From positions 1-58,702 of the forward strand of contig DF237499.1 in the NCBI GenBank assembly GCA_000708835.1: a stretch of DNA of 58,702 nucleotides. Reading direction: 5' to 3'. The notes below the pieces were generated by a model, which did no database searches, was not told where the DNA came from, and worked only from the letters and a program-made list of their open reading frames with translations. A program made the translations under genes and the position numbers. This DNA comes from Klebsormidium nitens. Lineage: Eukaryota > Plantae > Klebsormidiophyceae. This document shows positions 34,344 to 51,397 of the stretch, in pieces; within the stretch, counting starts at the first letter, position 1; each line of letters begins with the position of its first letter.

Positions 34344-37300
34344 TCAAGGCTTCGGTTTCGCTTTGCCGAATCGAATGGTAAGCTTCAGCGGCCCTTTGTC
34401 CGGCGGCGGCGGTGCTTTCTTTGGCTCCGCACCCGCTTCCATCTTCACTGGGCCCATTTCAACCTCCGGTTTCGGACGACTCGCTTCCTCCTCCAGCAAA
34501 GCGTCCAACGACTTCATCCTCTTTTTGGGCTTCGACCCCCGCTTCTCGTCCCGGTTTTTCTTCCGCTTCCTCTCCCCCTCCCGTTTCTCCCCCTCTTTCT
34601 CGACGCCCTCTGCCCCGTACTGTCCCGTGTCAATAGGCTCTGCCTGATCCTCCAAACCTCTAGCGCCCTCGAGAGAAGCCCCTTTAGTTCCCCTGTCACC
34701 GTCTAGTGTCAATACTTCTCCGCCTCGCTCGTCTTTTACCCGCTTCAATCGCTCTTCCGTGCCCCTCTCTTTTTTGATCCGTATCCGATCGATCTGCGGC
34801 GCTTCCCGTGGTTGCGCTCCTGCCTTTAGCTCTGCCGCTGAAATCTTTTCCCTCTTGTCTCCGCTCACCTTTGCCCGCTTCTCCGCATCATCCTCCCACT
34901 GCCCGTCCCGCAAACCGCCTCCTTCCGTGCTCTCATTTTTCTCTCCCTGTGACTTCCCTGAAGCACCCTTCGCCTCCCTCACCTTCCACTCGCGGCTGAA
35001 CCCAAAGGCCGTCTCCGCAGCCCCTCCCCTCGCCTCCATCGGTCCCCCACTGTTCCCCTTCCCCATCTTTTCCTTCGCTCGGCCTTCTTCCCCGCCAATT
35101 CTTGCTTCCATCTCTACCCCTCCTGCCCCTCTTTTCTTGCCCAGCATCTCCTTCACTCTCCGCAACCGCTCCTGCTTTTTCTTCTCCGCCTCGTCCGGCG
35201 ACCCCAGCCCCCGCGCCTGCGGCCCTTCCAAGTCATCCAAGTCGCCCAAAACGCGTTCGCCCACGTTCGCAAACCCAACTTCCGCTCCTGTTCCGCCCCC
35301 GGCGCTTCCTTCACGCATCCGCCGCCGCTTCCGTTCCTCCTTCGCCGGTGACGGAATCACGTCCCCGATTTCCGCTTCCAGCTCGTCAATATCTGACGTC
35401 AGCTTCCCGAAGTGACTCCCCGAGCCCACGCCCCCATCCCTTCCCCTCTTTCCGAGAACGCTACCTCCTGTTGTGCTCGCGAGCACTCCAGCGTCTGCCA
35501 CGTGTTCCCCGCGCTCAGTCCCCGCCGCACCCTCCTCCCCGGCCCTTGCCTCTGCTTCCCGCTTGACTCTCACCCGTGGTGTTTCCCCTCCGGCTTGGAG
35601 CTCCGATGCACGCAAACCATCGGCAGTGACGTCACCACCGGTCGCCCCAGGCCGCTCATCTTCTGCCGCCCTTTCTTCGCTCTTCCTCACATCCTCCGCC
35701 GTTGATTTCTTTTTATTCAGCGATGCCCTTTCTTCATTTTCTGCAGCGCCCCTTGCTGCGGCCTCCGCCTCCCCCGCCCCCAGGCTCTTCCGTCGTCTCC
35801 TCTCCTCCTTTCGCCTCCGCTTATCCTCCTTTTTCGCCGCCTTCATCCGCTGGTACTCCTCGTCGCTCATCCCCTTGAGCTTGTCCCTACGCTTCTCATC
35901 ATCGCTGCTCTCAGGGCCTTTGCGAGCGGACGGGGTCTGGGCCTGCAGGCACGCCGGCGCGAGGCATGCTCAGTAAATCAGCAGCACGCAATGGTCATCG
36001 CACTGGGCCGAAGGTATACTCAATCCGTGCAATTTTCATTTCAATATGTTCAAATTTCCCGACAAACCAGCAACAGCTCAAGGTTATTGCCACGTCCGGT
36101 TCAAACGGGCAGCCAGTGCAAGATGCTGAGCAGAATGACGGGCAAGGAGCCTGACAAGCTGCGCAAGCAGGGCAAGATAGGGCGGAAAAGGACGGCGAAA
36201 TTCGCTCGGGAAAACGGCAGCTGTCCATTTTTAGCCTCTTCACAGTCGGAGCACCGATCAAGATCTGCCCTCCGGAGGGCAGCAGATCGCGTTCCTAGAC
36301 TTCGTGCCCTCACCTCGGCCGGCGGCTGCTCCGTCTCCGTCTTGACGCCCTTCCAAAGCCTCCCCTGCGAGTCGACCCCCGGGCTCGGCCGCGCACTTTC
36401 CGTCGGCGTCACACCCTTCCCGGGGGGCCCTTTGTCCCCAACTACCACTCCTTTCAGCTTCAGCTTCAGCTTGAAGCCGGGTGCCTTTGCGGGTGCTTCC
36501 TTCGTTGGCAGTAACTCCGCCTTGGGAGTTACTGCAATCACACCGATGTCTGCGGCTTTCTCTCGTTTGACAGGAGTGGCGTCCGGTCCTTGCCCCTCGT
36601 TAACCGTCTTCAAAATTGCTCCCTTTTCAAGGTTCAATTTCAGCCCACTCTTTTTTTTGACGCCCTCAGCCTGCCCAGTACCTTTCACAAGAGCGGTTGG
36701 GGCCCCTTTTTCTTCCCTCGGCTTTGGCCCCTCGACGAATTTCCCAATATCTTTGCGAAGAGGAACTAGACCCCTGACCATTTTAAGTCTCTCAACGTCC
36801 TTCTCTGAAAGCGCTCCCTTCCCAAGGCTCAATTTCAGCCCGCTCTTTTTCTTGCCCCCCTCAACCTGCCCAGTGATCTTCACAGGCACAATCGGCGCCC
36901 CCGTTCCTTCCCCCAGTTCTGGCCCCTCGACGGGCGCCCCCTTCTTTTCTTTCAATCTTGGCCCCTTGAACGACCTTTCGACATCTTTGCGAACGGGCAA
37001 TCGACTTTCCCCTTCAACCCTGACCTCTCCTTCCTCTTCTTCGTCCGCGATTGTCAACACCCGCCCCGGCGCGTCCTTGCTGCGCTTCTGCGCTGCAACC
37101 TCGTCTCCTAAGCCCTTCGGCGACTTGATCTCGCCTTCCTCGGACGGTTCCAGAACCACAGTCTCCACCCGGCCTTCTGCTTTCGTTTCAGGTACCGTGC
37201 CTCCCTCACCCTGCTTCAGCCCCTTGTTTTCGACTCCTTCGCCCCTCTTCTTGTCACCCTTCTTCTTGCCTTTTCCCTTCTTCTGCTTCTTCAACCTCTC

Positions 37301-40300
37301 CTTCTCGTCCCCTTTATGCACCCTCGCTCCACGCTCGCCCTGTGCCTCTGTCCTTTTTTGTTCCCCTTCCCGTTTGGCCGGCACCCCCTCCCCTTCGCTC
37401 TTCTTCTGAAGAACTTTCTCTCCGTCCCCGCTTCCTTTCGCGGCCCGAATCTCCCCTTCTTCCTCCTCTATCTCTCCTTCTTCCTTCGGCTCGTTCCGCT
37501 CCTCTCCAACCTCGGCAACCCCCCTGCTGTCGTTTCCATTTTCCGCCGCCAGCATTGCTTCGATCTGCGCCATCCGCTCGCGCATTGCCGCCTCCTTTGC
37601 CGCCAGTTCCGCCAACGCCGCATCCCCCGGCACCCCCTCCGAAGACAACTCTCTAAGCTTCCCCTCACTCTGCACTGCCATAGCGGGTACCTCTAGAACT
37701 TCCATGCTGCCGTCCTCCGTGTCAGGGGGTGCCCCTTCCCCTTCGCTCGGCCCCCCCGCCTCCGTTTCCACCAAGTTCGCAATCGGCACCAGAGACAGCG
37801 TGCGTGGGACTCGCGCTGTCGCGGAGCGGAACTTGCGGGCGCCCGGCCGCGGTAATTCGATGTGGGGCCGGGGCGGGCCCCCTTCGCCCGGTTCTCCTTC
37901 CACCGAGGCGCTTCGCAGGGGCGTGGACGCCTCTTGGTGTGCCTCGTCCATGTGACCGGGGCCGGCCTCGGGTTGGCTGCTTCTCTCCGTTGCCTGCAGA
38001 ACCCAAGTTTCACGATTCAGGACTCAACTCGCTGAATACTCTATAATGCTTTGCTAGATCGTGATGAACAAACGCAGGCCAAAGACGCAGGGCCAAGCCG
38101 TCTCAACGATGTCATGTAGACAGCTGTCTAGATTGTGCACCGGAAAAAGCTGCCAAACCCTTGCCACCGTCAGCTGAGTTGGACTTCACACGGCGCTGTT
38201 TTGGATTGCTTCCTGCAGGCACGACGTAGGCGACTAGAAAGCTCCGTCTTTGGGGGACCAACCAGTACAGCGCTTTCCTTCACGCAACACTGAAATGGCA
38301 CGGCCATGCTATGCCACAGATCGTCCACAGAGCTGCTCTGGATCCTTAAGCCTCTAGTCGTGTCGCCGATCAACCAAGGCCCGAGCCGACAATCCAAAGT
38401 TTTCAATAGCCCCGTCGTTCGCTTGCGAAGGCCCCCGGTCCGCTCCTTACCTGGGCGCTTCTCTCGGACACGCTCTTCTTTCTGGGCATCGCTTTTCCGG
38501 ACACCGCTGCGGACTCGCTCACCTCCGGACGCTCGACGGCCTGCCGGACGGACGTCCCGGCGCCCTCGGACGCGTCAGGACCCAGCTGGGAGGAGCGCAG
38601 CGGGCCGTGGGACAGCTTCAGACGGACCTTCAGGCTGTCTGCGGACATCAATGATCAAATAGCGAATTAGCGCTAAGTGCCACTTCATTCCAAGACCGTG
38701 CTTTGCGGGGCGTCGGGGATCCGGAAAGGCTTTCAGGACGGCTAGGACCTGTCGTTTGAGCCAGCGGTTGCATACGAAAGAACCCAAAGAAGACGAAGTC
38801 TTGGCAGACAAAATTCTCAATCTCAGCGGCGCGGCACGTGTGCAACTTGAAGATAAAGTACGAGTCGATCCATGTTTTTGGCGCAGACATCAACATGATC
38901 GCGTAACCCCATTCAAGGAAGATTCCCTAGCGAGAAATGGCGCTTTGAGACAATGGATATAGAAGCACACAGCCGAAAGGAGGCGTGGATCCTCCCCATC
39001 CTCACCTTGTGTGGCGGAAGGGGCGGCCATGCCCCCCGGCCTGGGGAGCCGCACGAAAATTTTGGTTCCGTCCGTCTTGGTGGGCTCTGCCACGCTCTCG
39101 GAGCCGGCCCGCCGAATCCGAACAAGCAGGGGCACGTGGCCCTCCTCTTTCCCGGAAGGGGGGGCCGCCGCCTGAGCTTCTGAGGGGGGGGCTTCTGGTT
39201 GTGGGAGGTCGATGCCGTGCGTGGTGTACATGCGGAACAGGGTGGCGGGCCTGCCGGAGAGGGGGGGGAAAAGGGGGAAGGTTAGCGGGAGATTCAGGGG
39301 GCCGATCAGGGAAAGGGGAAGAAATGGAACCGTCTGATGCACGCCCAGGGCATGAGGAGGTCGGTCGCTGAAAGTTGTCCGTGAGATGCTCAGACTTTGG
39401 GCTTTTAGGATTTTAGGGTTTTAGGGTTTTAGGCTTGGAGAAGGACTGCAATTGTGGGCAGAAGTACAAAGTTGACGAGACACGGTGGCTGCAATGAAAG
39501 AGACGACAGAGAAGGGTGCCTTCTTTGAAAAGCAGGGCGAGCTGCATATGTAGGCTGACTCCTTAACTCAAGCCCGTGATGCAACTTACTTGTCAATGCT
39601 TAATTTACACAGCATCTCTGAATTTCTCAAAGTAACTTCCTTAAGGACGTTGTACGCACTCAGACACTCGGAATACGGATCAAGGACACGTGGGAGACTT
39701 AACGTTGGCGGTGGCTGCTGACCTGCCGTGCATCTGTTGGTCCAGCATGAAGGCCACGTGTCGGAGGCGCACGTCCCGCCAGCCCCGCCTGCTGGTCACC
39801 AGGCCTTGCAACCGGCCACCCCCCGCCACCGCGCCGCCCTCAGGGGTAGCCACCCCCTTATGCGAGGCCCACAGCCGGCTGGCGTACGTCAGCAGCTTCG
39901 TCACGACTGCGCAAAAAGGAGCTCCGAAGCCCCGATCAGTCCGCGCCAAAATCTTGGAAGTCGCGGATTGGGCTGAGTCCTCTGTAGAAGGTTCACAGAC
40001 AATGAAAGGGATCCGCTTTGTGAGAGGGCACTTGCTCTTTGGACCTCACAAACTGTACCCTGTCAAACGCTCTCGAGCTGGGAACATAACAAGAAGCTCT
40101 CGAGCCCAACTTTGATAGTTACAAAAGCCTCTTCAAGTAATCTCAGTTGTAGCAGTGCTTTTGTCCCTCCCTCGGATCAATCCCCACGCCTTGCAGGGGT
40201 GTTCTCACCTTTGGCTGGCTCGCGGTTGTCGGCCACCTTGAGTGCCACGTGGAGGGCTGCGGTAGGCCCGTCCCAGCGGTGCTCCAGGTCCATGAGCGAG

Positions 40301-43300
40301 CGGAACGCGGCCACGCGGACCTTGTACACGTGGCGGGCCGACGTGTGCTGCAGCAACAACACCTGAAGGCGCTCCTTCTGCAGAACGGAAACGAGTCTGT
40401 CTGTGATTGGGAAGCAACAACACGATGCATGAGAAGTCACCAAAGTGGAGCTCACTTTCGGCTTGGGCTTCGAAGGAAGCGCCGGAAGGGGAGGGTTGTC
40501 AAAACATTGCTTCTAAGCGATGAGGGCAAACGGCACAGAAGGATACGGACAGGGGTGGGACAACACTACTGCTTGAGACGACGAAGAGACGGGATTTCAG
40601 AGCTACGTCACGAAGCAGCGGGAAGTTCAGGCCCGGTGACTCACTAGGGTTTCGTCCCGCGGCATTTGGCACGCCAGCCTGGCGAGCGTGCGGAGACAGC
40701 TAATAGTCACCACGTGGCCGTGGCTGGGGAGCAACCTGAAAAACATTGCACAGATGTGAGCACTTGGTCTGACAGTCCGACGTAGCGAACGGACTCGCTG
40801 GTGAGAGGGTATCATAGCCCGGGTGTCAACCTACGTTTCTCTACACTGGTGTAAGCACCCTTTCAGACTTCTTTCCATAATTGCGGTCTCCACAGTGTCC
40901 AAGTAGGTAGCCTCACTTTCTCAAATTGGGGACCCGCGCACCTTGTTAAGCATAATCGTATGCGAACATCCAGTATCAGAGAGGACGGTTCGACCTCTCA
41001 GAAACAGGGCACCAAACCCCTGATGTGGAGACTAACCACTCCTTCAGAGATCGTGTCAAGTGAAGCTCACCGGTCGTACTGGAGGTGTTTGTCGAGCTGT
41101 TTCAGGAGTTTGGGCAAGTGCTGCGTGCGCGTCTGCACAGTAACGAGGAAAGTCAGGAGCCTTCACAACGCCTCTAAGACCTTTACTCGGATCTCACAGG
41201 GCACACTGGGGCCAGTCTTTACTGCTAACTCTATGTACGAAGGGCCAAAGAGTGACGTCAGCAGTGGAACGCACTCGAAGACAATGATCCCTGGGCTGAA
41301 GCCCATCAGAGCAACTCGTTGTGTCGGTCTTGCATACGACCATTGCGATGCAATGATGCCTGCAGATAAAGGAGCCACCCAAAACGTCTTTCGCTACGCC
41401 CAACGTCTGCGGTCACAGAGAGACAGTCCGGACAAAGTCTCGCTCAATCGCCAGAGGAGAAGTCTGAGACAGCCCGGTTGCCTGCGCGCACCTGCGGACT
41501 GTACTTGGCCGCGCCAACGGCCTCAATGACAACCGCCAACCAGTTGCCGTCGGAGAAAGCGTTGGCACTATTGTCGTTGTACTGCAGATGAAAAGCAGGT
41601 ATAGATGCTCCTCAAGCTCACTCAGACATGTAGCCCAGAAATCGTGGCCGCGGGACCAAAAGAACCTCTGCGGTGTCACTCATTTTGTTGCCACATGAGC
41701 ACCGGGTCTCTTTCCCGGGTCTCTTTCCCGGGTCTCTTTGTGCGACATATCACAAGATGCTGCAGGCTTGGCAACTCAGAAGTCCGTTACGAGCTGCTCA
41801 AGTAGACTATAGCAGCTCCCACCAATCCTTTCCCTTATCAGCTATATCGCTTTTGACCTCTCCGAAATGCAATAACCCCGATCTAAGAGACGAGCGGTTC
41901 CGTAAGTTCTTTGCGCATTTCATACCTCACGTTCTTCGAGCCTTGGCTTAGAGTTCGATCACACTTCTCGTCAAATGTTATCAGTCTTTTGGCCGCCCAC
42001 CTTGAGCACTTCTAGCAAGAACTCGACCGCCTCGAGCGGCGAGAAGCCGTCACTCCCGCGCACGGAAGCCACGGCCCCAGGGATGGCCTGATCCACGAAG
42101 TAGTCCCGGAAGTCGGAAAAGTCGTTTGGCCTGGAGCCAGAACATCGATGAATCTGTTACCGAATAAAACCTGGGAGGGAGAGGACATTTGCAGATAGCC
42201 TCGGACATTCAACAGTCTCTTAACTGAGGTGAGCCAAGCTCAGCAACAACAACCACTCATTATCTGATGAAAGTCGTCGGTGCAATGACGTATCGGGGCA
42301 GATGCACAGCAAGTGGGAGGGATCGCGTCTGCGTGCCGCGTACTTTGGCTGCTCGACGTCCGGGTCGTACCGCCGGCTGCGGTAAAACTTGAGCAGCATG
42401 TCCAGCCCCGCCCAGTTGGTGCTCTGCGCGAAGCATTGTGACGCTCAGCAAGAGTATACGCTTGCCAAACGCGTCCAACTCGAGTGCGGTAACTCACTGA
42501 GCAGAAGAAGGAGGCGTTCAACCGAGTGGCGACTATGAGCCAACACGACAAGGAGGGGCTTCCCGTCCAATCGTTTCTCGTCTACCGTACGAGGCGGTTC
42601 GAAGTCCAGGTGTGGCCCGCTCCTGAGCAGATTGGGTTGCTACTGAACGGGGTCACCTAGCAGTGGACTTCCTGACAGCGTTGACAAGCACGCATACGTT
42701 TTGCAACCTGCGGCCTGTCCAGCATACTTTCAGAGTAACCCTCTAAGCAAGCTGTGCTTCACTTGCCTCCTTGGCCGTTCGACCGAGGGCTCTGGCCGCC
42801 TCCGCTCTCACGTGGCAGTACACCTGCAAAGCAGCAGAGAGAAGAATCCGTATTGACACTCGAAGTAAGCACTTCTCACATCGTAGTCTTACGGTTTTCA
42901 GAGGGACTGCGTATCGACTACCAAATGACGTATCCGTTAGGGTCCTTGGTTCGGTGTCAGAAGCACACACAAAGACCGAGCTCCGTCACAAGGCGTTTTC
43001 TACAGGCGTTCATGGGCAGTAAACGTTCACAACTGTATCAATCATCGATGCAAGGCCTTACTAATCCGCAGGTTTAGATGGCAGGTCGTTTTATCCCGGA
43101 ACTCACCCGGCCGTCTGCCAAGCAATTGTTGAGCGCATTCATGGCTGCGAAGGTCGGCCGGGGCAGAGCCCCGAGCGCCGTGATCGCCTCCACCTGAGCC
43201 ACCACGTCTCGGTCCTTCTCCAGCTGGGCAATCTGCGAGGCAGGTTCTCAATCATGTGTGACTCTGGGCTCCAGAGTTTGCTTCCTGGTCGACCTTCCTC

Positions 43301-46300
43301 CCAACCCTCCTTTTTGACCTGCTGCTACCGTTCTTTTCATAAGCGAGAAACAATAAATTGGATTAAAGATGCTCTTGGCTCTGTATCCGGCATGGACCCA
43401 CGCCCAATTTCGCTCGGCCGTGACAGCTGGCGCTCCACCTGTCTGACAAGGTCTGCCTGACCCAGATCGGTCTCCCTGTTTTTGCATCTAAACCTGAAGT
43501 ATTGTTGAAGTTTTTCGAAAACTGCGTGTAGAATCAAGGCGGACGACTCCAGTACTCACCCACATATGCTCCGTCTGATGAACGTGCAGCTCGGCAAGAA
43601 CGTCCAGGTCCGGGTTGACGCGCACCCACACCACCGCAGAGTCCACGCTGCGCACAAGCAAAACACCAAGGGGTTACAAAGGCTGACCTGAAATACGAAA
43701 CATTGAAAGGCTGAAGGAGCGGTATATCGAGAAAGCGGTGTAAATGGAAGATACATTTTGGCACCAGATAGACCTGATGTTCCTCAAGTCTCTAAAACGA
43801 AGCGGAAGCTTGGAGTGTTTCCCCACGCTTCTACAACGAGTGTCGCATACACCGCAGATACAGCTCAGCTGGTTGCATACAGCTCGATTGATTCTGCACA
43901 ATAAAGCCGAATGTAAACAAGTGGATTGAAGCGTTTCCTTCAGTCAAGATTAGGACCCTCAAAACGATTCCAAATCCAACAATCTCCTCACTTGTGTTCC
44001 CGCGCCCCGTTAGCCGCACCAGCCAGCACCTTGAGCGGCCCCCCGAGCTCTCCGTCTTCCTCAATTTCTGCGGGCGCCCCCTTCTTCTTCTGACCGTACT
44101 TCCCTTTGCGCTTGGTGGGTTTGCCCTCCTTGGCGATGAGCTTCTTGGCGGCCGTCAGCTTGGAGTGGCACTGCAGCTCCGCCTTGTCAAATGGGTCGCC
44201 CGACAGCGCCACCAGGTGGTCGAAGCTGCCGTCCAGCTCCTGAAGAACATCGGGCATAAGCGACGGCTCGGTTGTGAGAGATTGCTTTGGTTGGTTTGCA
44301 CCAACCGTGTACCTTTGACAGTGTCGGATACTGAGACGCTTGTAAAATCCAACGGGACCACCCTGCGGTTACAACTACATGCCCGCACGTACTATGCTTA
44401 GAGATGCCGCAATCAAGCAACGCTTTACGAAACTGCAGAAACTTATGGGGGTGAGAATGACCAAGCGCAGTGAGCATTTCAACGTCCTTTGCTTCACTTC
44501 TCAAACGTCGCAGGCAGAGTATGCTGCCAACCAACAGCGCCCTGAAGAAAGACAACAAGATCCCAAGCGAAGTAAGGAGACATCCGAAGAAGATCCCTAC
44601 GGCCTTACAAAACGGGTGTCCGTTGACAATTTGGCATCTGTGTGAGACACCACACCTGCACGCGGATGGGCAGCGACCCTGGCCAGCCGCTTTCGGGGTT
44701 GATGTCGCTCAAGTCGCTGGACTTTGCGCCACTGGATGCAGCCAGTACGGCGGGATCGGCGGAAGCGGTGGCAGTCCGCACGAGAGCCACCTCCAGCAAG
44801 TTGCGTCGCCGGATGTAATTGAAGGCGACACTGCAAAGGAGAGACAAGCGTTGAAGCAGCCAACGGGAAGGTGCGTTTAGCATCTGAAGAGCACTAGTAG
44901 GAGCACTTTTGGTGGCCAAATGGATTCTGAGAACATAGGAAGGTTCGAACGTAAGCACTTCTCGACGCACCAAGGTTTTCAGCTTGGCGCGCGTCACCGC
45001 ATAGAAGCACTAGGAGGTAGAAGAAGAGCAAGTTGCTTGTAAGATTGTTCACCGGAGTTGACCTGCAAGTAGAAGCGCGGCGATACCTGATGCGTGGACA
45101 GCCGGGAGACTTGACCCATCGCGCAAAGAACTCTTTGAGCGCGCGCTTGTCCTGGCCGCCGACCTTCCGCAAAATGGCCTGGAACTGCGAAAGAAGGGAG
45201 CAGGGCAGCTGTTGAAAACACGTGAACAGAAGGCAAAAGGCTCGGGCAGTTTCAAACCAAGAAATGAGCCGAAACGGCCAGATGCGGAAGGAAGCATATA
45301 TCCAGTCGTCCGGCTGCCAATTGTCACTTTACAAACCCCTGGAGCATCTTTCCTTTTCAACTTGCAGCCCCCGTGGACTCTCCGACTGTCTGGGGGAATC
45401 CATGGCGACACGAGAACAAAGGAAAAGCTGTGGCACGAAGGAGACCGCTAACGACTCGTACTGTTGGCGTGAGTGGATTTTCACAGCCTGGCTCTGCACT
45501 AGGTGCTCACGTCTCGAGTGGTGACAGCTCGCCCTGGCCGGCGCCCGTCCCTGGCCTGGGTCACCAGCTCCTGGATGCACTGCCGAAGGAAGTACGAAAG
45601 TTCTCAATAACAAAGCCTTTAACATGCATCTTGATTGTGGAGACCAAGGTCTATCTCCATCTTTTGGAAGTGCACAGCAGCCGACTCAGGCCGTGTGCTT
45701 TTGGAGCTGCGCTCAGCATAGTGCGCTAGAGAAAAAGAACGGTGCATCGTCAACCAGAGTGAAAGAGCGAGTCAATCTTCTCACAAGGGAGAACAACATC
45801 AACTCGAAGAGCGTCTCGGACAGAAGTCACTTCGCAACCTGGCGGCGTGACGATGCAGGAAAAGATTGATTGATTTGTTCCGCAGCGGACGCGCTCACCT
45901 TTTTGAAGCCGTCCGGCCCGACCTGCTTTTCCAGCATTGCCAGCACGGCCTTCTGCACGGCAGACGTCATGCTGCGCTCAGCAAAAGCACTGACCGCAAC
46001 CGCGGGCCTTTGCATTCATCTGACTCCCATTGGCTACGCTCTACCCTTTGTAGCAGAAATGAAGGCCCACAAAACCAACAGCCTTTCAAACAAACCTCGA
46101 CAATCTCCTATTCGGAAGGATGTTTGTTTCGGACGCAAGCATGCAAACTAAGATGGTTTTCTGAGTTACCAAAACCGAATCATCCATTCTGCACTACTGC
46201 CTCTCACAATCTTGACAGCCACCGGGCGGACGATCCCCAGAAACCACAAAGCTTTACTTACCGCCTTCCAAGTCCGAACGCTGCTCCTCTCGAGCTCCTC

Positions 46301-49300
46301 CAGTTGGACGGCCGGGCCGGCTGCCTTCTCGGATTCGTCCAAATCTGGAATGCTCAGCGGAGCAGCGCCGTCAACGTCAGCGAGGCACACCGCCTCATAC
46401 TCCTGCAAGTAGCAAAATCACGAGTACGCAAGCGCTCTTTGCTCTCCCAGTCCAGGTCCTAGCTGGTAGCAGAAAGGCTAACGCGAATTCAGGTTGAGGA
46501 ACCTATACGCACCAGTACGATTAGAGGTATTCAACTGTCAGCGCTCGCGCACCTTGTAGCGGCGGTAGCGGAGCTCGTTGTTGCCCAGGTGGCGCCGCAC
46601 AAAGACGTCCGTCAGGAGGGCCGCCAGGCCGTCGATCAGCCACACTGGGAGCAGCGCCACGCAGACGCGTCAAGATTGGATGACCAAGCAACAGCAGATA
46701 ATGACCCCAGTACAGTATGAGATTGATCCAAGTCAAGCAGATTCCTTTCGCGCCAGCTCTAGAGCCGTCCAAACTATTCTGAAAGGATTTACGGCGGCCG
46801 GTCCTACCGTCCGCTGACGAGTCGGCTGTGATGAAGGCGCCGAACCATTGGCGGGCCAGGAGGGAGGCCAGCTTGATGCGGGTCGCTGACGTCTGCAAAA
46901 GATTTAAGGCATAGAGCTCATGTCTCAAGGATGGGCTTCAGGCATGGCCGCTGCTTTTTGACGACGAGAGTCGACTCAAACACTGCTCACTACGTAACGC
47001 TCAAAACCTAACCGTCGACCCTGCTCCCTCTAAGATTCAGAAATTGAGAGGATTCCACGGTTTGACTCCGAACCATGGATCTGATGAAAACATGCATCGA
47101 GTTTAGAAACATCCTGAGGAAACCCAGACGGCCCGATTGGGGGTGGCTCAACCAACGCTCGCTTCGATCACCATAACAGTAGCCCACCCCTTTCAATTCG
47201 CGCCAGCATTCAAAACTCTCGCTTGTGTACTTTCAAACCGGTCCTCTGCAGCCCTGCAACTAGGGTGGGAATGAACAAAGTGACGCTCCGACCTGATCAA
47301 TAATGCGGTCGTCCACCAGGAGGTGTGCGCTGAGCAGGGCCGTGGAGAGGCCCATGGTGGCGGTTTCGTACGCCGCTTCTGAGTCCAGAAACACTTGCAC
47401 GTACGAACTGAAGGGGAACGGCAGGTCCAGGTACTCCTCGTACGTGCTGCACGACAGGCGGAACAGCAGTCGTTTCAGAAAATGACTGGGCAGCAAACTT
47501 AGTTTGAGGGTCCATAAGAAAGCATTGAGGAAGAACGTCAGTCCTCGCAAGAAGTCAGTGTCCAAAAGGGGTTGAACGTGGGCGACAGACATCGGCCTTC
47601 CAGGATTGGAACCAGCGGCCGACACTCCTAGATCCTCGCCAATACTGAAAGTGACCGACAGACAGAAACGAGCTTTTCGGAACTGAACGTAATGAACAGA
47701 CAGAAACGTGGTTTTCGGTTGAAAAAGTTACTCCGCTCTTTCCAATGTTGAAACAGCCCGAAGGGAGTTCAAAATGTCACAAGTCGCTAGTTCGGACACC
47801 TCCATGCATCCCAGGCTGGCAGTTCTCAGTAGTCTGGACTGTGTGTGCTCCGCTCAGACCAGACGCTTCATGTCCAAACCGACAAGCTCAAAGAGTCTCC
47901 AACAGCGAACCTGAAAGCGGTGTGCAGAAAGTGCACGGTTTGGCGCAGCTTCTTGAGGTGCCCCGGCATGCAGACGTGCGTGATGGCCGGGGCCTGAACG
48001 TCCGGGAGCACCACGAAGGGGCCCACCGCCAGCGAGATCAGGCCCGGGGTGGTCGGGGCAGCTACCCGGTACGCCCACACCTTGCGCTGCTCCGCCGCGC
48101 TCGTGAACGCCTGAGACGAGAACTCTCGTGCTAATTATACCGTATGCTACTTTGTTTGCTAATTTTTACTTTGTGAAAAGGAAGATCGAGGCCGTCGAAC
48201 GCCGATCAGACGGTCTGAGAGAAGATCTTCTTGTGCACTTTTTGGGTTTGGTCAAGGCGTCCGCCAGGATTCCGGAAACGGTGGTGCGCTCTAGCGCTCT
48301 CCTCCCTCCTTTCTGGCGACCAAACAAGCAGTGCAAGGGCGGCTTCTAGGTGCATTCAAGCCCTTCCGAAGAAGAGAGCAGGAAAGAGTAGCGTCGCTTG
48401 AAAGCTACAGTCAAAAATGCCAACCTCCGCAATTTGCGAAAAGAGAAGTGGTGGATTATCCTGAAGTTGGGACCCAGTATGATTGGCACGAGACTGTTAA
48501 TGACATACTTCCTACTTTGATGTGCAAGCGTGTTCGAGGACACGCTCAAGCGCCATCCCTGTTGGGCGGTCGGTCGCAATGGGCGGAACGCCGTTGAAAC
48601 GAGATGATCGTAGGCGCTTGATGTATGGATGGGGCTACAGCATGATATGCTTGAAGATACGACTGAACGGGCGTGTGGACACGATGGGGTACGACCCTGA
48701 GTATGTATTCCAATATCGTGTACCTCAGCAAACTTTGTGAGGCTTTCTTGTTGAAGTCGATCAGTGACAACGTCAAAAAGCGAGTTACTTGAGTTGCAGC
48801 ATCTGATGTATCATTGAAACTCGTGTACTTGGCAAAAGGGACGGGGACAGTGAGTCTTACCTGATACAAGAGCTCCCCGCTGCTGATCGCCATCAGTTGC
48901 GCGTCCACAGTGTATTCCAGGTCGAAGCTGCACAATTGGACGCCGTGATAAAAAACAGTCGTATGGAAAGGCCCAATTCTCATCGGCCCGTTGAACTTGG
49001 CTATCAAGCATATGCTTCGGGGCTGGGACCGGCAAGCGTGCGTTCAGGATCATCTCCCCTGTACCGGCCAACTAGAATAGGCCAGGAATGTAACATGGGC
49101 TTCCAGATTCTGGACAACTTTGGGCAACGGCTTGCTAAGCATCAATCCGGCCAAAGGGACTTTGCGATAACCTGACACTTCAAATCAACCATAGGTTGCT
49201 AGCCCCTTACATTTTCTTGGCTTCTTCATGTCCTCAATTCGGCGTAGCTTAGCACAGACCAACGCTCAAGGAACGACTCCCAAGACAAGTTCAGCCGGCC

Positions 49301-51397
49301 TTGGGACACTGATCACAGGCAAAAGCCGCACCTGTGGGGATGTTCGGAAGTGTCCGCACAGGGGAACCAGCACCGCGCCCTCCGGAGCTGGTTGTTTGTA
49401 TGCATGACGTCACCCTGGAAGTTCACTCCAGCACGCGCATGCTTCACCCGGAACCCGATGCGCACTCGAAGCAGCTGCAGGAAAGGCCTTACTTAGCGTT
49501 CACCAGAAGAGGGCATAGGCGTCAAATTGAAGAAACGGACTTTCGCCCTAATGGGTTCCACTGGCCCTCGAGAGACGCTAAACATTGGGAAAGGGAGTCC
49601 TGACACCCCGCATGGTCGGACTTGAGGATGTTCTCTTAGAAGAGAGCGTCTGTCATTGTCAGCTCTAATTCGCGGTGCTTCAATAGCCCTGGTACCATAG
49701 CATCTCGACTTCGGGAACCAGATTTCGCCAAGCTGACGTCAGAGTGTGACAAGAGAAGCGCCTCAGGGCTTTCATTCCATGGAGAATGTGAAGGTTTATA
49801 CGAGGCCCTACCCGAGAGTTCGAAATACCCCACCACTGACGAGTCAAAACCACAAACAGAAGCCGTACAGATTCCGTCACTGCTTCCAGATACATGTCCC
49901 TACCGTTGTGCTCGTCTCATCTTTGGCCTCGATCTCCTTCCCATCTTTGGCGCTCCCCTTCCTGGCACTCCCTTTCTTCTCCTTCTCGTCACTCCTGTTT
50001 CTCCCCCCAGAGGGCTCTCCTTTCTCCGGTGTCCCTTTCTCCGGCGTCCCTTTCTCCGGTGTCCCAGTCTCTTTTCCGCTAGGCTCCTCTTTCCCCTCGT
50101 CTCCCTTCTCCACTTCCACTGGCTCAGTCCTCCGCCCACCTGAACCTTCAACAAGCGCCAATCCATTCTCAGCTGTCCCTGCTTCTCTTTCATGCCCCTT
50201 CTCCTTCGTTTCCCCAGTCTGTCCAATTCCCACTGCCCCGTTTTCCACCCCCTTCAAGTCCGCCCCGTTTTCCACCCCCCCATTCGGGTGCCCCTCCCTT
50301 CCAGGCCCCCCAGTGGCTTCCACTTGCGCCCCATTTGCACCAAAACCGTCAGACGTAACCCCCACGATTGGCTCATGGCTTGCCCCCGCTTCTTGCAACA
50401 CCTCTGGGAGGTGAATGAGCAGCTCAGGCTCAGATTCCTCTTGCAACAACCGGACATAGTCCCTGTAAACCTTCTCGCCTGCGTTGTTTGGATTATCCTC
50501 TTTGGTTGCTGCATACACCTGCTGCAGAGACCGCACCCGAGTCTGGCCAGCGGGGGGAGCGAGTTGCTGAAACTTCGCGGGGGCGCCTTCCACGAAGATC
50601 CTGGAGATTTGGAGGCCGTTGGCATGGAGGCCCAGGATGCGAGGGGCGTCCGCAGGGGGGGAGAAGACGTCGAGCTCAGTGTACCTGAGGAGAAGGGGTA
50701 AGTTGATTGGTACGGAATCAGAAACCCGGCAGTCTACGATCGCGTCCACTTTAACCAATTGAGAATGAAAAGGCAACCAGGATATTTGAATGCGGACGGG
50801 AATTTTCAATGAGAATTGAAGGAGGAGCAGTCGATTGGGGATGACGTGTCGTTCACAGTGGTTGGAAACCTCCAAAGCGTGCAATGATGTACTTTAATAG
50901 TCCTTGAAGACACTGCAGGATTCCTAACCTAGTCAAGCAGCATGATACCTACGCAGCTGCTTGACAATGAAGTCACAACACAAAGGTGGGACCAGCTGGG
51001 ACCCAGAATACGAGCGCCACCGATCAGCAGCATTGAAAGCGCCATCAGAGAGTTGATGCAGGTCCAATGTCTTTGGCCAGACTTTGAAGAGAAACCCAAT
51101 ATGTGAAAATCCTGGGTGCCATTCAAAGTCATTGTGAGCCGCTTGATTTTGAAGCATACACCATGCATGGCATAGCAATGAAATTGTGTTCTCGAGAGTG
51201 GCAGCTCAAGGTGCATGATCATCGCGGCAATCAAAGGCAAGGGGTGCACTGCTGGCCAGGCAGCACGCTCACCCTTCAAGAGTTTGCGCTTTCAAGTCCA
51301 CCGCCAGGCACAGCTTCTGATTCTGGACACGGCACAATGGGACGCGCCGAAAGCTCTCCTCTGCAGAAGCAGGAAGGGTGTCCCCAAAGTCCGCCAT
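34344..51397 (-). CDS. TAF2: TFIID subunit 2 (aminopeptidase-like fold, HEAT-like region, very long charged disordered C-terminal tail), about 28 exons
   Basis: Exon 1 (51397-51273) encodes [12 protein letters not shown]...EG, continuing as YTELDV...ILGLHA. Downstream exons encode [22 protein letters not shown]...[73 protein letters not shown]...[45 protein letters not shown]...PNDFSDF, LKYNDNS and DRLLPSH. The last exons are 37993-36314 and 35942-34344. Confidence 0.93.
39403..39433. repeat. Short interstitial telomeric tract (TTTTAGGG-type) in a TAF2 intron
   Basis: TTTTAGGA TTTTAGGG TTTTAGGG TTTTAGG. Confidence 0.85.
41703..41739. repeat. 13-bp tandem repeat (CGGGTCTCTTTCC, about 3 copies) in a TAF2 intron
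   Basis: CGGGTCTCTTTCC-CGGGTCTCTTTCC-CGGGTCTCTTT. Confidence 0.85.
47658..47718. repeat. ~38-bp-period imperfect tandem duplication in a TAF2 intron
   Basis: ACAGACAGAAACG..TTTTCGG starts at 47658 and again at 47696. Confidence 0.7.

Follow-up and report, generated by a model that had tools for sequence, protein, structure and literature searches.

What is the role of the long charged tail encoded by the last exons of a TAF2 gene on contig DF237499.1 of Klebsormidium nitens (GenBank assembly GCA_000708835.1), and could short strands within it serve as docking sites for ET domains? The contig, 58,702 nt in length, with a GC content of ~54% and eukaryotic, was analyzed in full and is here called the window. 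A multi-exon gene on its minus strand spans ~50.9 kb down to position 34,344, with its last four exons (A to D) encoding the tail, and a first-pass annotation had proposed that alternating hydrophobic and basic strands in this tail form an array of ET-binding-like motifs. We found the motifs to be non-random, with six sites being under apparent selection and fitting the published ET-binding consensus, whereas three of the proposed islands fell away as being either unconserved or a duplicate. For these six candidate sites we consider ET binding to be the best single explanation, with an even chance of being correct.

The seven motifs for which positions had been proposed all translate exactly as written on the minus strand. 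Within the four tail exons, 5-mers of the type h+hxh or hxh+h were found 11 times as compared with 2.0 expected, and strictly alternating hydrophobic/basic 5-mers were found 9 times as compared with 0.45 expected (~20-fold); none of 5,000 residue shuffles reached either of these counts. It had also been claimed that such strands are the main hydrophobic islands of the tail, which was an overstatement because only 8 of the 24 islands defined by a 3-of-5 hydrophobic criterion were of the alternating/basic kind; they are instead one prominent class. The conserved sites are 5–8-residue alternating runs of hydrophobic residues and Lys/Arg, flanked by Gly, Pro or Ser, with a Pro preceding both motif 1 (PLLVRIRR) and motif 6 (PLKLTIRF, PFKLKIRF or PLKLKIKF, and PFKIKIKI in the NCBI assembly introduced below), with a consensus of SGLKLxLxKGA for motif 4 across genomes and with motif 6 located 7 residues ahead of the C-terminus. 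All six match the pattern hxhKh or Phi-x-Phi-+-Phi-+-Phi (Taf14) or that of Phi-+-Phi-+-Phi (BET), while RVRVKR and RIRIKK, each having two hydrophobic positions, match the ET-binding pattern poorly.

For analyses of conservation we compared the window with a Logan assembly (L001), with two loci from the JGI metagenome 3300060284 (L002 and L003) and with an NCBI assembly (P0004), the first three having been found by a word search in which the last exon served as query and P0004 having been added by a profile search; the window and L001–L003 are the four genomes referred to in the following. The six sites persisted in 4/4 genomes, with the substitutions being L/V/I/F/M swaps that keep the alternation, although no more than 18–22% of the alignment columns in exons C and D were invariant. 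At the three core sites of these two exons, all hydrophobic (11/11) and all basic (7/7) residues of the window kept their class in both L002 and L003, as compared with a background class retention of 38% for hydrophobic and 57% for basic residues at saturated synonymous divergence (dS). When all of the listed islands in exons C and D were pooled, the hydrophobic class was kept at 12 of 18 positions as compared with 61 of 161 in the background (P = 0.018), which is a modest excess. Judged by these alignments, six sites are kept by selection, with exons A and C holding two each, exon B one and the extreme C-terminus the sixth.

With regards to the conservation of the motifs as first listed, these six sites were conserved, but RVRVKR and RIRIKK were not, and LKLSL and LKLNL count as one. 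RIRIKK was kept only in the closest relative, L001, and RVRVKR is probably not a functional site, because it was conserved in no relative. LKLSL and LKLNL are located on the two arms of a direct repeat (36604-36737 and 36799-36932; 134 nt, 195-nt spacing, 76% identity), in which a 65-residue module carrying KKKSGLKL[S/N]L was duplicated in tandem and in frame. The duplication was restricted to the window genome, and since the relatives hold a single copy of the module, the window species gained one extra motif. Because LKLSL and LKLNL derive from one site by duplication, comparison of the genomes gives a count of six ancestral sites, with seven in the window species.

Table 1. Coordinates of the TAF2 core exons, the tail exons and the alternating motifs in the window.
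Feature	Position	Strand	Location and properties
TAF2 core exons	39723..50893	-	Putative aminopeptidase-like region, TAF2_3rd, TPR_TAF2_C; TAF2_3rd and TPR_TAF2_C by Pfam and PDB matches of single exons
Tail exon A	39006..39250	-	245 nt; phase 2 in, phase 1 out
Tail exon B	38451..38638	-	188 nt; phase 1 in, phase 0 out
Tail exon C	36314..37993	-	1680 nt, 560 codons, phase 0/0; canonical splice sites
Tail exon D (last exon)	34344..35942	-	532 codons (1596 nt) and stop 34346-34344; conserved acceptor CAG|G
Motif 1, LLVRIRR	39109..39129	-	Exon A; PLTIKIRR in L002/L003; pattern Phi-x-Phi-+-Phi-+
Motif 2, KIFVRLPR	39040..39063	-	Exon A; KILVRIPK in L001, KILLRLPK in L002/L003
Motif 3, LKVRLKL	38613..38633	-	Exon B; SLKVRLKL identical in all four genomes
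Motif 4a, LKLSL	36824..36838	-	Exon C; LKLTL in L001; arm of tandem duplication
Motif 4b, LKLNL	36629..36643	-	Exon C; second copy of motif 4a module; LKVKL in L002/L003
Motif 5, FKLKLKLK	36452..36475	-	Exon C; LKLKLKLG in L001, MKFKIKVK in L002, MKVKIKVK in L003
RVRVKR	35559..35576	-	Exon D; conserved in no relative
RIRIKK	34770..34787	-	Exon D; RVRIKK in L001, lost in L002/L003
Motif 6 (terminal), LKLTIRF	34368..34388	-	Exon D; FKLKIRF in L001, LKLKIKF in L002/L003, FKIKIKI in P0004

The identity of the gene, which had been named TAF2 at first pass, was confirmed through matches of its core exons to TAF2 domain families and structures. The exon open reading frame (ORF) at 43991-44368 matched Pfam TAF2_3rd (PF25316, the Ig-like third domain) with an E-value of 1.5e-5 and 25.8 bits, a score just below the whole-protein cut-off of 27 because a single exon was scanned, and the orthologous ORF of L001 also gave a TAF2_3rd match. 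The exon at 42141-41993 matched Pfam TPR_TAF2_C (PF25577, the C-terminal TPR/HEAT repeat) with 33.9 bits at a cut-off of 27, and its best PDB matches were TAF2 chains, from Komagataella (6hqa_A) and from human TFIID. Positions 7-45, 92-135 and 135-165 of the TPR_TAF2_C profile were found in order on the exons 43247-43077, 42141-41993 and 41611-41447. A Pfam scan of the single-exon ORFs from 49492 to 46524, short exons in which the N-terminal M1-aminopeptidase-like domain would be expected, gave no match. As TAF2_3rd, TPR_TAF2_C and TAF2 chains in the PDB were thus matched by single exons, the gene was named TAF2. It is the TAF2 gene of a Klebsormidium-type streptophyte alga.

The four tail exons (245 + 188 + 1680 + 1596 nt, ~1,237 codons) could be joined to this core by comparative evidence that we regard as good. 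The final core exon has a donor AG|GT at 39723 in phase 2, and the joins 39723|39250, 39006|38638, 38451|37993 and 36314|35942 were all canonical, phase-compatible and located at the same codon in 4/4 genomes. Both the acceptor of exon A (a polypyrimidine tract with AG|G) and its donor (G|GTGAGG) were kept in the window and in L001, L002 and L003, with residue identities for this exon of 73–85% across the four genomes, and the acceptor GCAG|AC and donor CAG|GTAAG of exon B were likewise common to all four. The limits proposed earlier for the two large exons (37993-36314 and 35942-34344) proved to be exact canonical GT-AG sites that are conserved in the three related genomes, in which core and tail exons of TAF2 are collinear on one strand; upstream of the tail in L001, ORFs with TAF2_3rd and TPR_TAF2_C were found. 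The earlier assignment of the tail exons to TAF2 thereby agrees with conserved, phase-compatible junctions. The ratio of nonsynonymous to synonymous divergence (dN/dS) was 0.35 for exon C and 0.47 for exon D when compared with L001, and 0.2–0.3 when compared with L002 and L003, where dS was ~1.9 or saturated; by this measure, exons C and D evolve as coding sequence. As a separate observation, retention of the intron after the last TPR exon (39722-39680) would add ~14 more codons until a TGA, giving a tail-less TAF2. It can also be mentioned that L002 and L003 are two diverged TAF2 3′ regions on separate large contigs of one sample (dS ~0.21–0.24, dN/dS ~0.4), which could be related strains, haplotypes or paralogues.

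The description of the tail as charged, of low complexity and longer than 1000 aa held true, with K+R making up 19% of the residues, D+E 18%, G 14% and ILVFM 17%, and with AlphaFold2 predicting its two large exons to be mostly disordered. In the models, made for exons C and D with four-sequence alignments, the predicted local distance difference test score (pLDDT) averaged 49 over exon D and 41 over exon C, and only a few charged helices were confident. At every motif site in these two exons the pLDDT was <60, and these sites are hence predicted to be located in an intrinsically disordered region (IDR). The only confident structures of exons C and D were two helices, of which one, at exon D residues 27-60 (~35864-35763), is highly charged with pLDDT >90 and follows the conserved GMS-EEY exon start, and the other, at exon C residues 122-154 (~37630-37532), is rich in Ala, Glu and Met.

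Binding of a TAF2 tail to an ET domain has been described in other organisms. Ligands of the yeast Taf14 ET domain follow the pattern Phi-x-Phi-+-Phi-+-Phi and are found in Sth1, Snf5, Ino80, Sas3, Tfg1 and Taf2 (residues 1393-1406) (PMC7442819), and in a crystal structure the residues F1395, V1397, K1398, I1399 and R1400 of Taf2, a protein that ends at 1407, occupy the ET groove and add a strand to the ET sheet (PMC9177701). The yeast site (Taf2CT, aa 1392-1402) and the terminal algal site are alike in belonging to a disordered TAF2 tail, in ending close to the C-terminus (6 residues before it in yeast and 7 in the alga) and in pattern, with F-x-V-K-I-R in yeast as compared with L-K-L-T-I-R-F in the window and L-K-L-K-I-K-F in relatives. 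They differ in that yeast has one described site, with its binding measured (Kd 1.6 µM) in addition to the crystal structure, whereas the alga has six conserved sites, known from their sequences, on a tail that is ~8x longer. In human TAF2, the start of the IDR contains LVLNL (994-998), to which the ENL ET domain binds (PMC13643176). Like algal motifs 1 and 2 just past the TPR domain, this hxhxh site is proximal within the IDR, but it is a single one, has no basic residues and has a YEATS-ET protein of the AF9/ENL type as partner. For the ET domain of BET proteins, an acidic EIEID strand pairs with LKIRL of murine leukaemia virus (MLV) integrase or IKLKI of NSD3 (bioRxiv 10.1101/2020.09.21.306696); these ligands, and 'KIKL' of CHD4/BRG1, share with the algal sites an alternating hydrophobic and Lys/Arg strand, often preceded by Pro or Gly, but they are located in proteins unrelated to TAF2, and a search of the literature gave no account, for whichever organism, of a contact between BET and TAF2. 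The claim of novelty made at first pass was supported in that no plant TAF2-ET or TAF2-GTE work was found in the searchable literature, but the idea is less new than had been stated, because binding between a TAF2 tail and an ET domain is established both in yeast (Taf14) and in human (ENL). What is new here is how many sites there are, how long the tail is and in which lineage it occurs, and the algal case would be an expanded variant of that known binding.

Could the alternating motifs have arisen without any function, as a by-product of low-complexity sequence that contains K/R and L/V? The 19% of K+R in the tail, together with the fast decay of RVRVKR and RIRIKK between relatives, would agree with such an origin, but it is disfavored by the residue shuffles, as well as by the persistence of the six sites at saturated synonymous sites in exons with so few invariant columns, and we assign next to no probability to it. 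Another alternative is that the sites are EAR-type LxLxL motifs bringing the TOPLESS/TPR co-repressor to TFIID, for which a link from TPL through TAF5 has been proposed (PMC12706133). The organism is of the plant lineage and three algal sites, LKLSL, LKLNL and LKLKL, match LxLxL literally, but the orthologous sites have Leu swapped for V, I, F or M (as in MKFKIKVK, LKVKL, PLTIKIRR and FKIKIKI), and their x positions are mostly Lys or Arg, whereas those of EAR motifs are mostly acidic or polar. EAR function reportedly depends on the leucines (Kagale and Rozwadowski 2011; Ke et al. 2015). Because the leucines are unconserved among the orthologous sites, the EAR/TOPLESS explanation was largely rejected and we find it improbable. 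By-eye comparison with PxVxL (HP1), APIM/PIP (PCNA), SUMO-interacting (SIM; SUMO) and classical nuclear localization signal (NLS) motifs showed that none of these fits the six sites.

The most serious competitor, doubtful in our view but of appreciable weight, is that the sites have been conserved, as short linear motifs or 'stickers', for another role, whether in contacts with another surface of TFIID or the preinitiation complex, in binding of nucleic acid by amphipathic basic strands or in IDR–IDR association, without involvement of an ET domain. Conservation alone names no partner, and EEGEI[RK], LGKRGRD, EERKRRR and MKSLDAL are examples of the many further islands that are conserved in this mixed-charge IDR. 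In the human TAF2 IDR, moreover, a basic H/K stretch drives localization to nuclear speckles and binding of SRRM2 (bioRxiv 10.1101/2024.02.05.578926), a case in which a basic disordered TAF2 tail gives TFIID an extra partner and condensate behavior; alternating strands do not drive it, and the algal tail has no such His-Lys run. Charge-driven association or an NLS would furthermore need no strict alternation, whereas a ligand that adds a beta-strand needs what is seen here, namely strict alternation, Gly/Pro flanks and four positions that stay hydrophobic through swaps among L/V/I/F/M, and the terminal site mirrors the yeast Taf2 ligand in pattern as well as in its distance from the C-terminus. 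We thus prefer ET binding on the basis of gene identity, exon structure, disorder, enrichment and site conservation taken together with the fit to the published ET consensus.

If ET binding is the function, each site would add a beta-strand beside an ET domain's acidic-hydrophobic EIEID-type strand, with the hydrophobic side chains of the site entering the ET groove and its Lys/Arg residues pairing with Glu/Asp of the ET domain. By both position and pattern, the terminal site has its counterpart in the site of yeast Taf2 to which Taf14 binds, while the proximal sites have theirs, by position, in the ENL-binding site with which the human TAF2 tail starts. Several sites on one TFIID subunit would let it hold several ET-domain readers at promoters, and the candidate partners would be YEATS-ET proteins or, as the obvious ones for the plant lineage, BET/GTE bromodomain proteins. 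The partner, the binding mode, the multivalent recruitment and the condensate behavior are all steps that we infer, and the formation of condensates by the tail would be pure conjecture. In yeast, acetyl-lysine reading is supplied in trans to TFIID by Bdf1. A bolder version, which we believe to be unlikely, is that the streptophyte TAF2 tail would act as a multivalent pad loading BET/GTE readers onto TFIID for acetyl-lysine reading in trans, with the terminal site being ancient, common to fungi and the plant lineage, and with its partner having switched from a YEATS-ET to a BET protein.

With regards to such partners, a degenerate ET pattern scan of metagenome contigs gave 120 plant or green-algal GTE loci (L005–L124), a set that is biased by the pattern. 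In all 120 the whole ET domain was encoded in a single exon and the strand DEIE[VL]DI was kept, with the EIExD core being imposed by the pattern but not the flanking D and I, and three of the loci scored as full-length Pfam BET. Within this biased set, the DEIE[VL]DI...TLWEL core hardly varied across contigs that ranged from angiosperm-like to GC-rich algal. None of the fetched plant or algal ET domains could be assigned to Klebsormidium. Complex prediction using a moss-type GTE ET domain (L016:3232-3471:-) and the C-terminal 60 residues of TAF2 gave scores of 0.30 and 0.29 as compared with a mark of 0.34, in runs without controls, and counts neither way.

Several results weigh against an ET-binding array. 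Three of the nine islands first listed were unconserved or a recent duplicate (RVRVKR, RIRIKK and one of LKLSL/LKLNL), and in the pooled islands of exons C and D the basic residues were kept at 10 of 16 positions as compared with 118 of 206 in the background, itself very basic, giving no excess. The exon joins derive from comparative splice evidence throughout, the observed conservation spans a narrow clade of four to five Klebsormidium-like genomes, and the text of an Arabidopsis GTE4 study by affinity purification–mass spectrometry makes no mention of TAFs. A last-exon profile used in an exhaustive hidden Markov model search of 1.84 billion representatives matched P0001, P0003 and P0004 only and no land-plant TAF2, from which we conclude that the tail as a whole is, as far as this profile can tell, lineage-specific; the full-length model of the alga itself was also absent from these matches. 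Queried with the last exon, the word search retrieved the three relatives only, and one with the exon A alignment gave no match, with full-length plant TAF2 (~1,300 aa or more) lying outside the length window of either query. When the C-terminal 60 residues were compared with PDB sequences, nothing relevant came up. Arabidopsis TAF2 seems to end in a similar, K-I-R-I-K-I-K-like run, a resemblance that is given no weight as evidence here.

How chromatin readers are coupled to TFIID has been worked out in detail for yeast (Taf14, Bdf1) and is only now emerging for human (ENL-TAF2, October 2026); for the plant lineage, the searchable literature yielded nothing. A conserved candidate ET-docking array on TAF2 provides a concrete hypothesis that can be cheaply tested. 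If true, the link between the TAF2 tail and ET domains would predate the split between fungi and plants, and histone acetylation in plants would have a physical route to TFIID. If ET binding fails, the six sites remain as well-defined conserved motifs in a fast-evolving IDR, each needing a partner.

Another element of the tail can finally be described. The acidic sequence EEGE[IV][R/K/E] occurs four times in exon C on the minus strand, at 37483-37466, 37462-37445, 37141-37124 and 37036-37019, and in all four genomes it ranks with the best conserved islands that the tail has. It has the appearance of a second repeated short linear motif, independent of the alternating sites.

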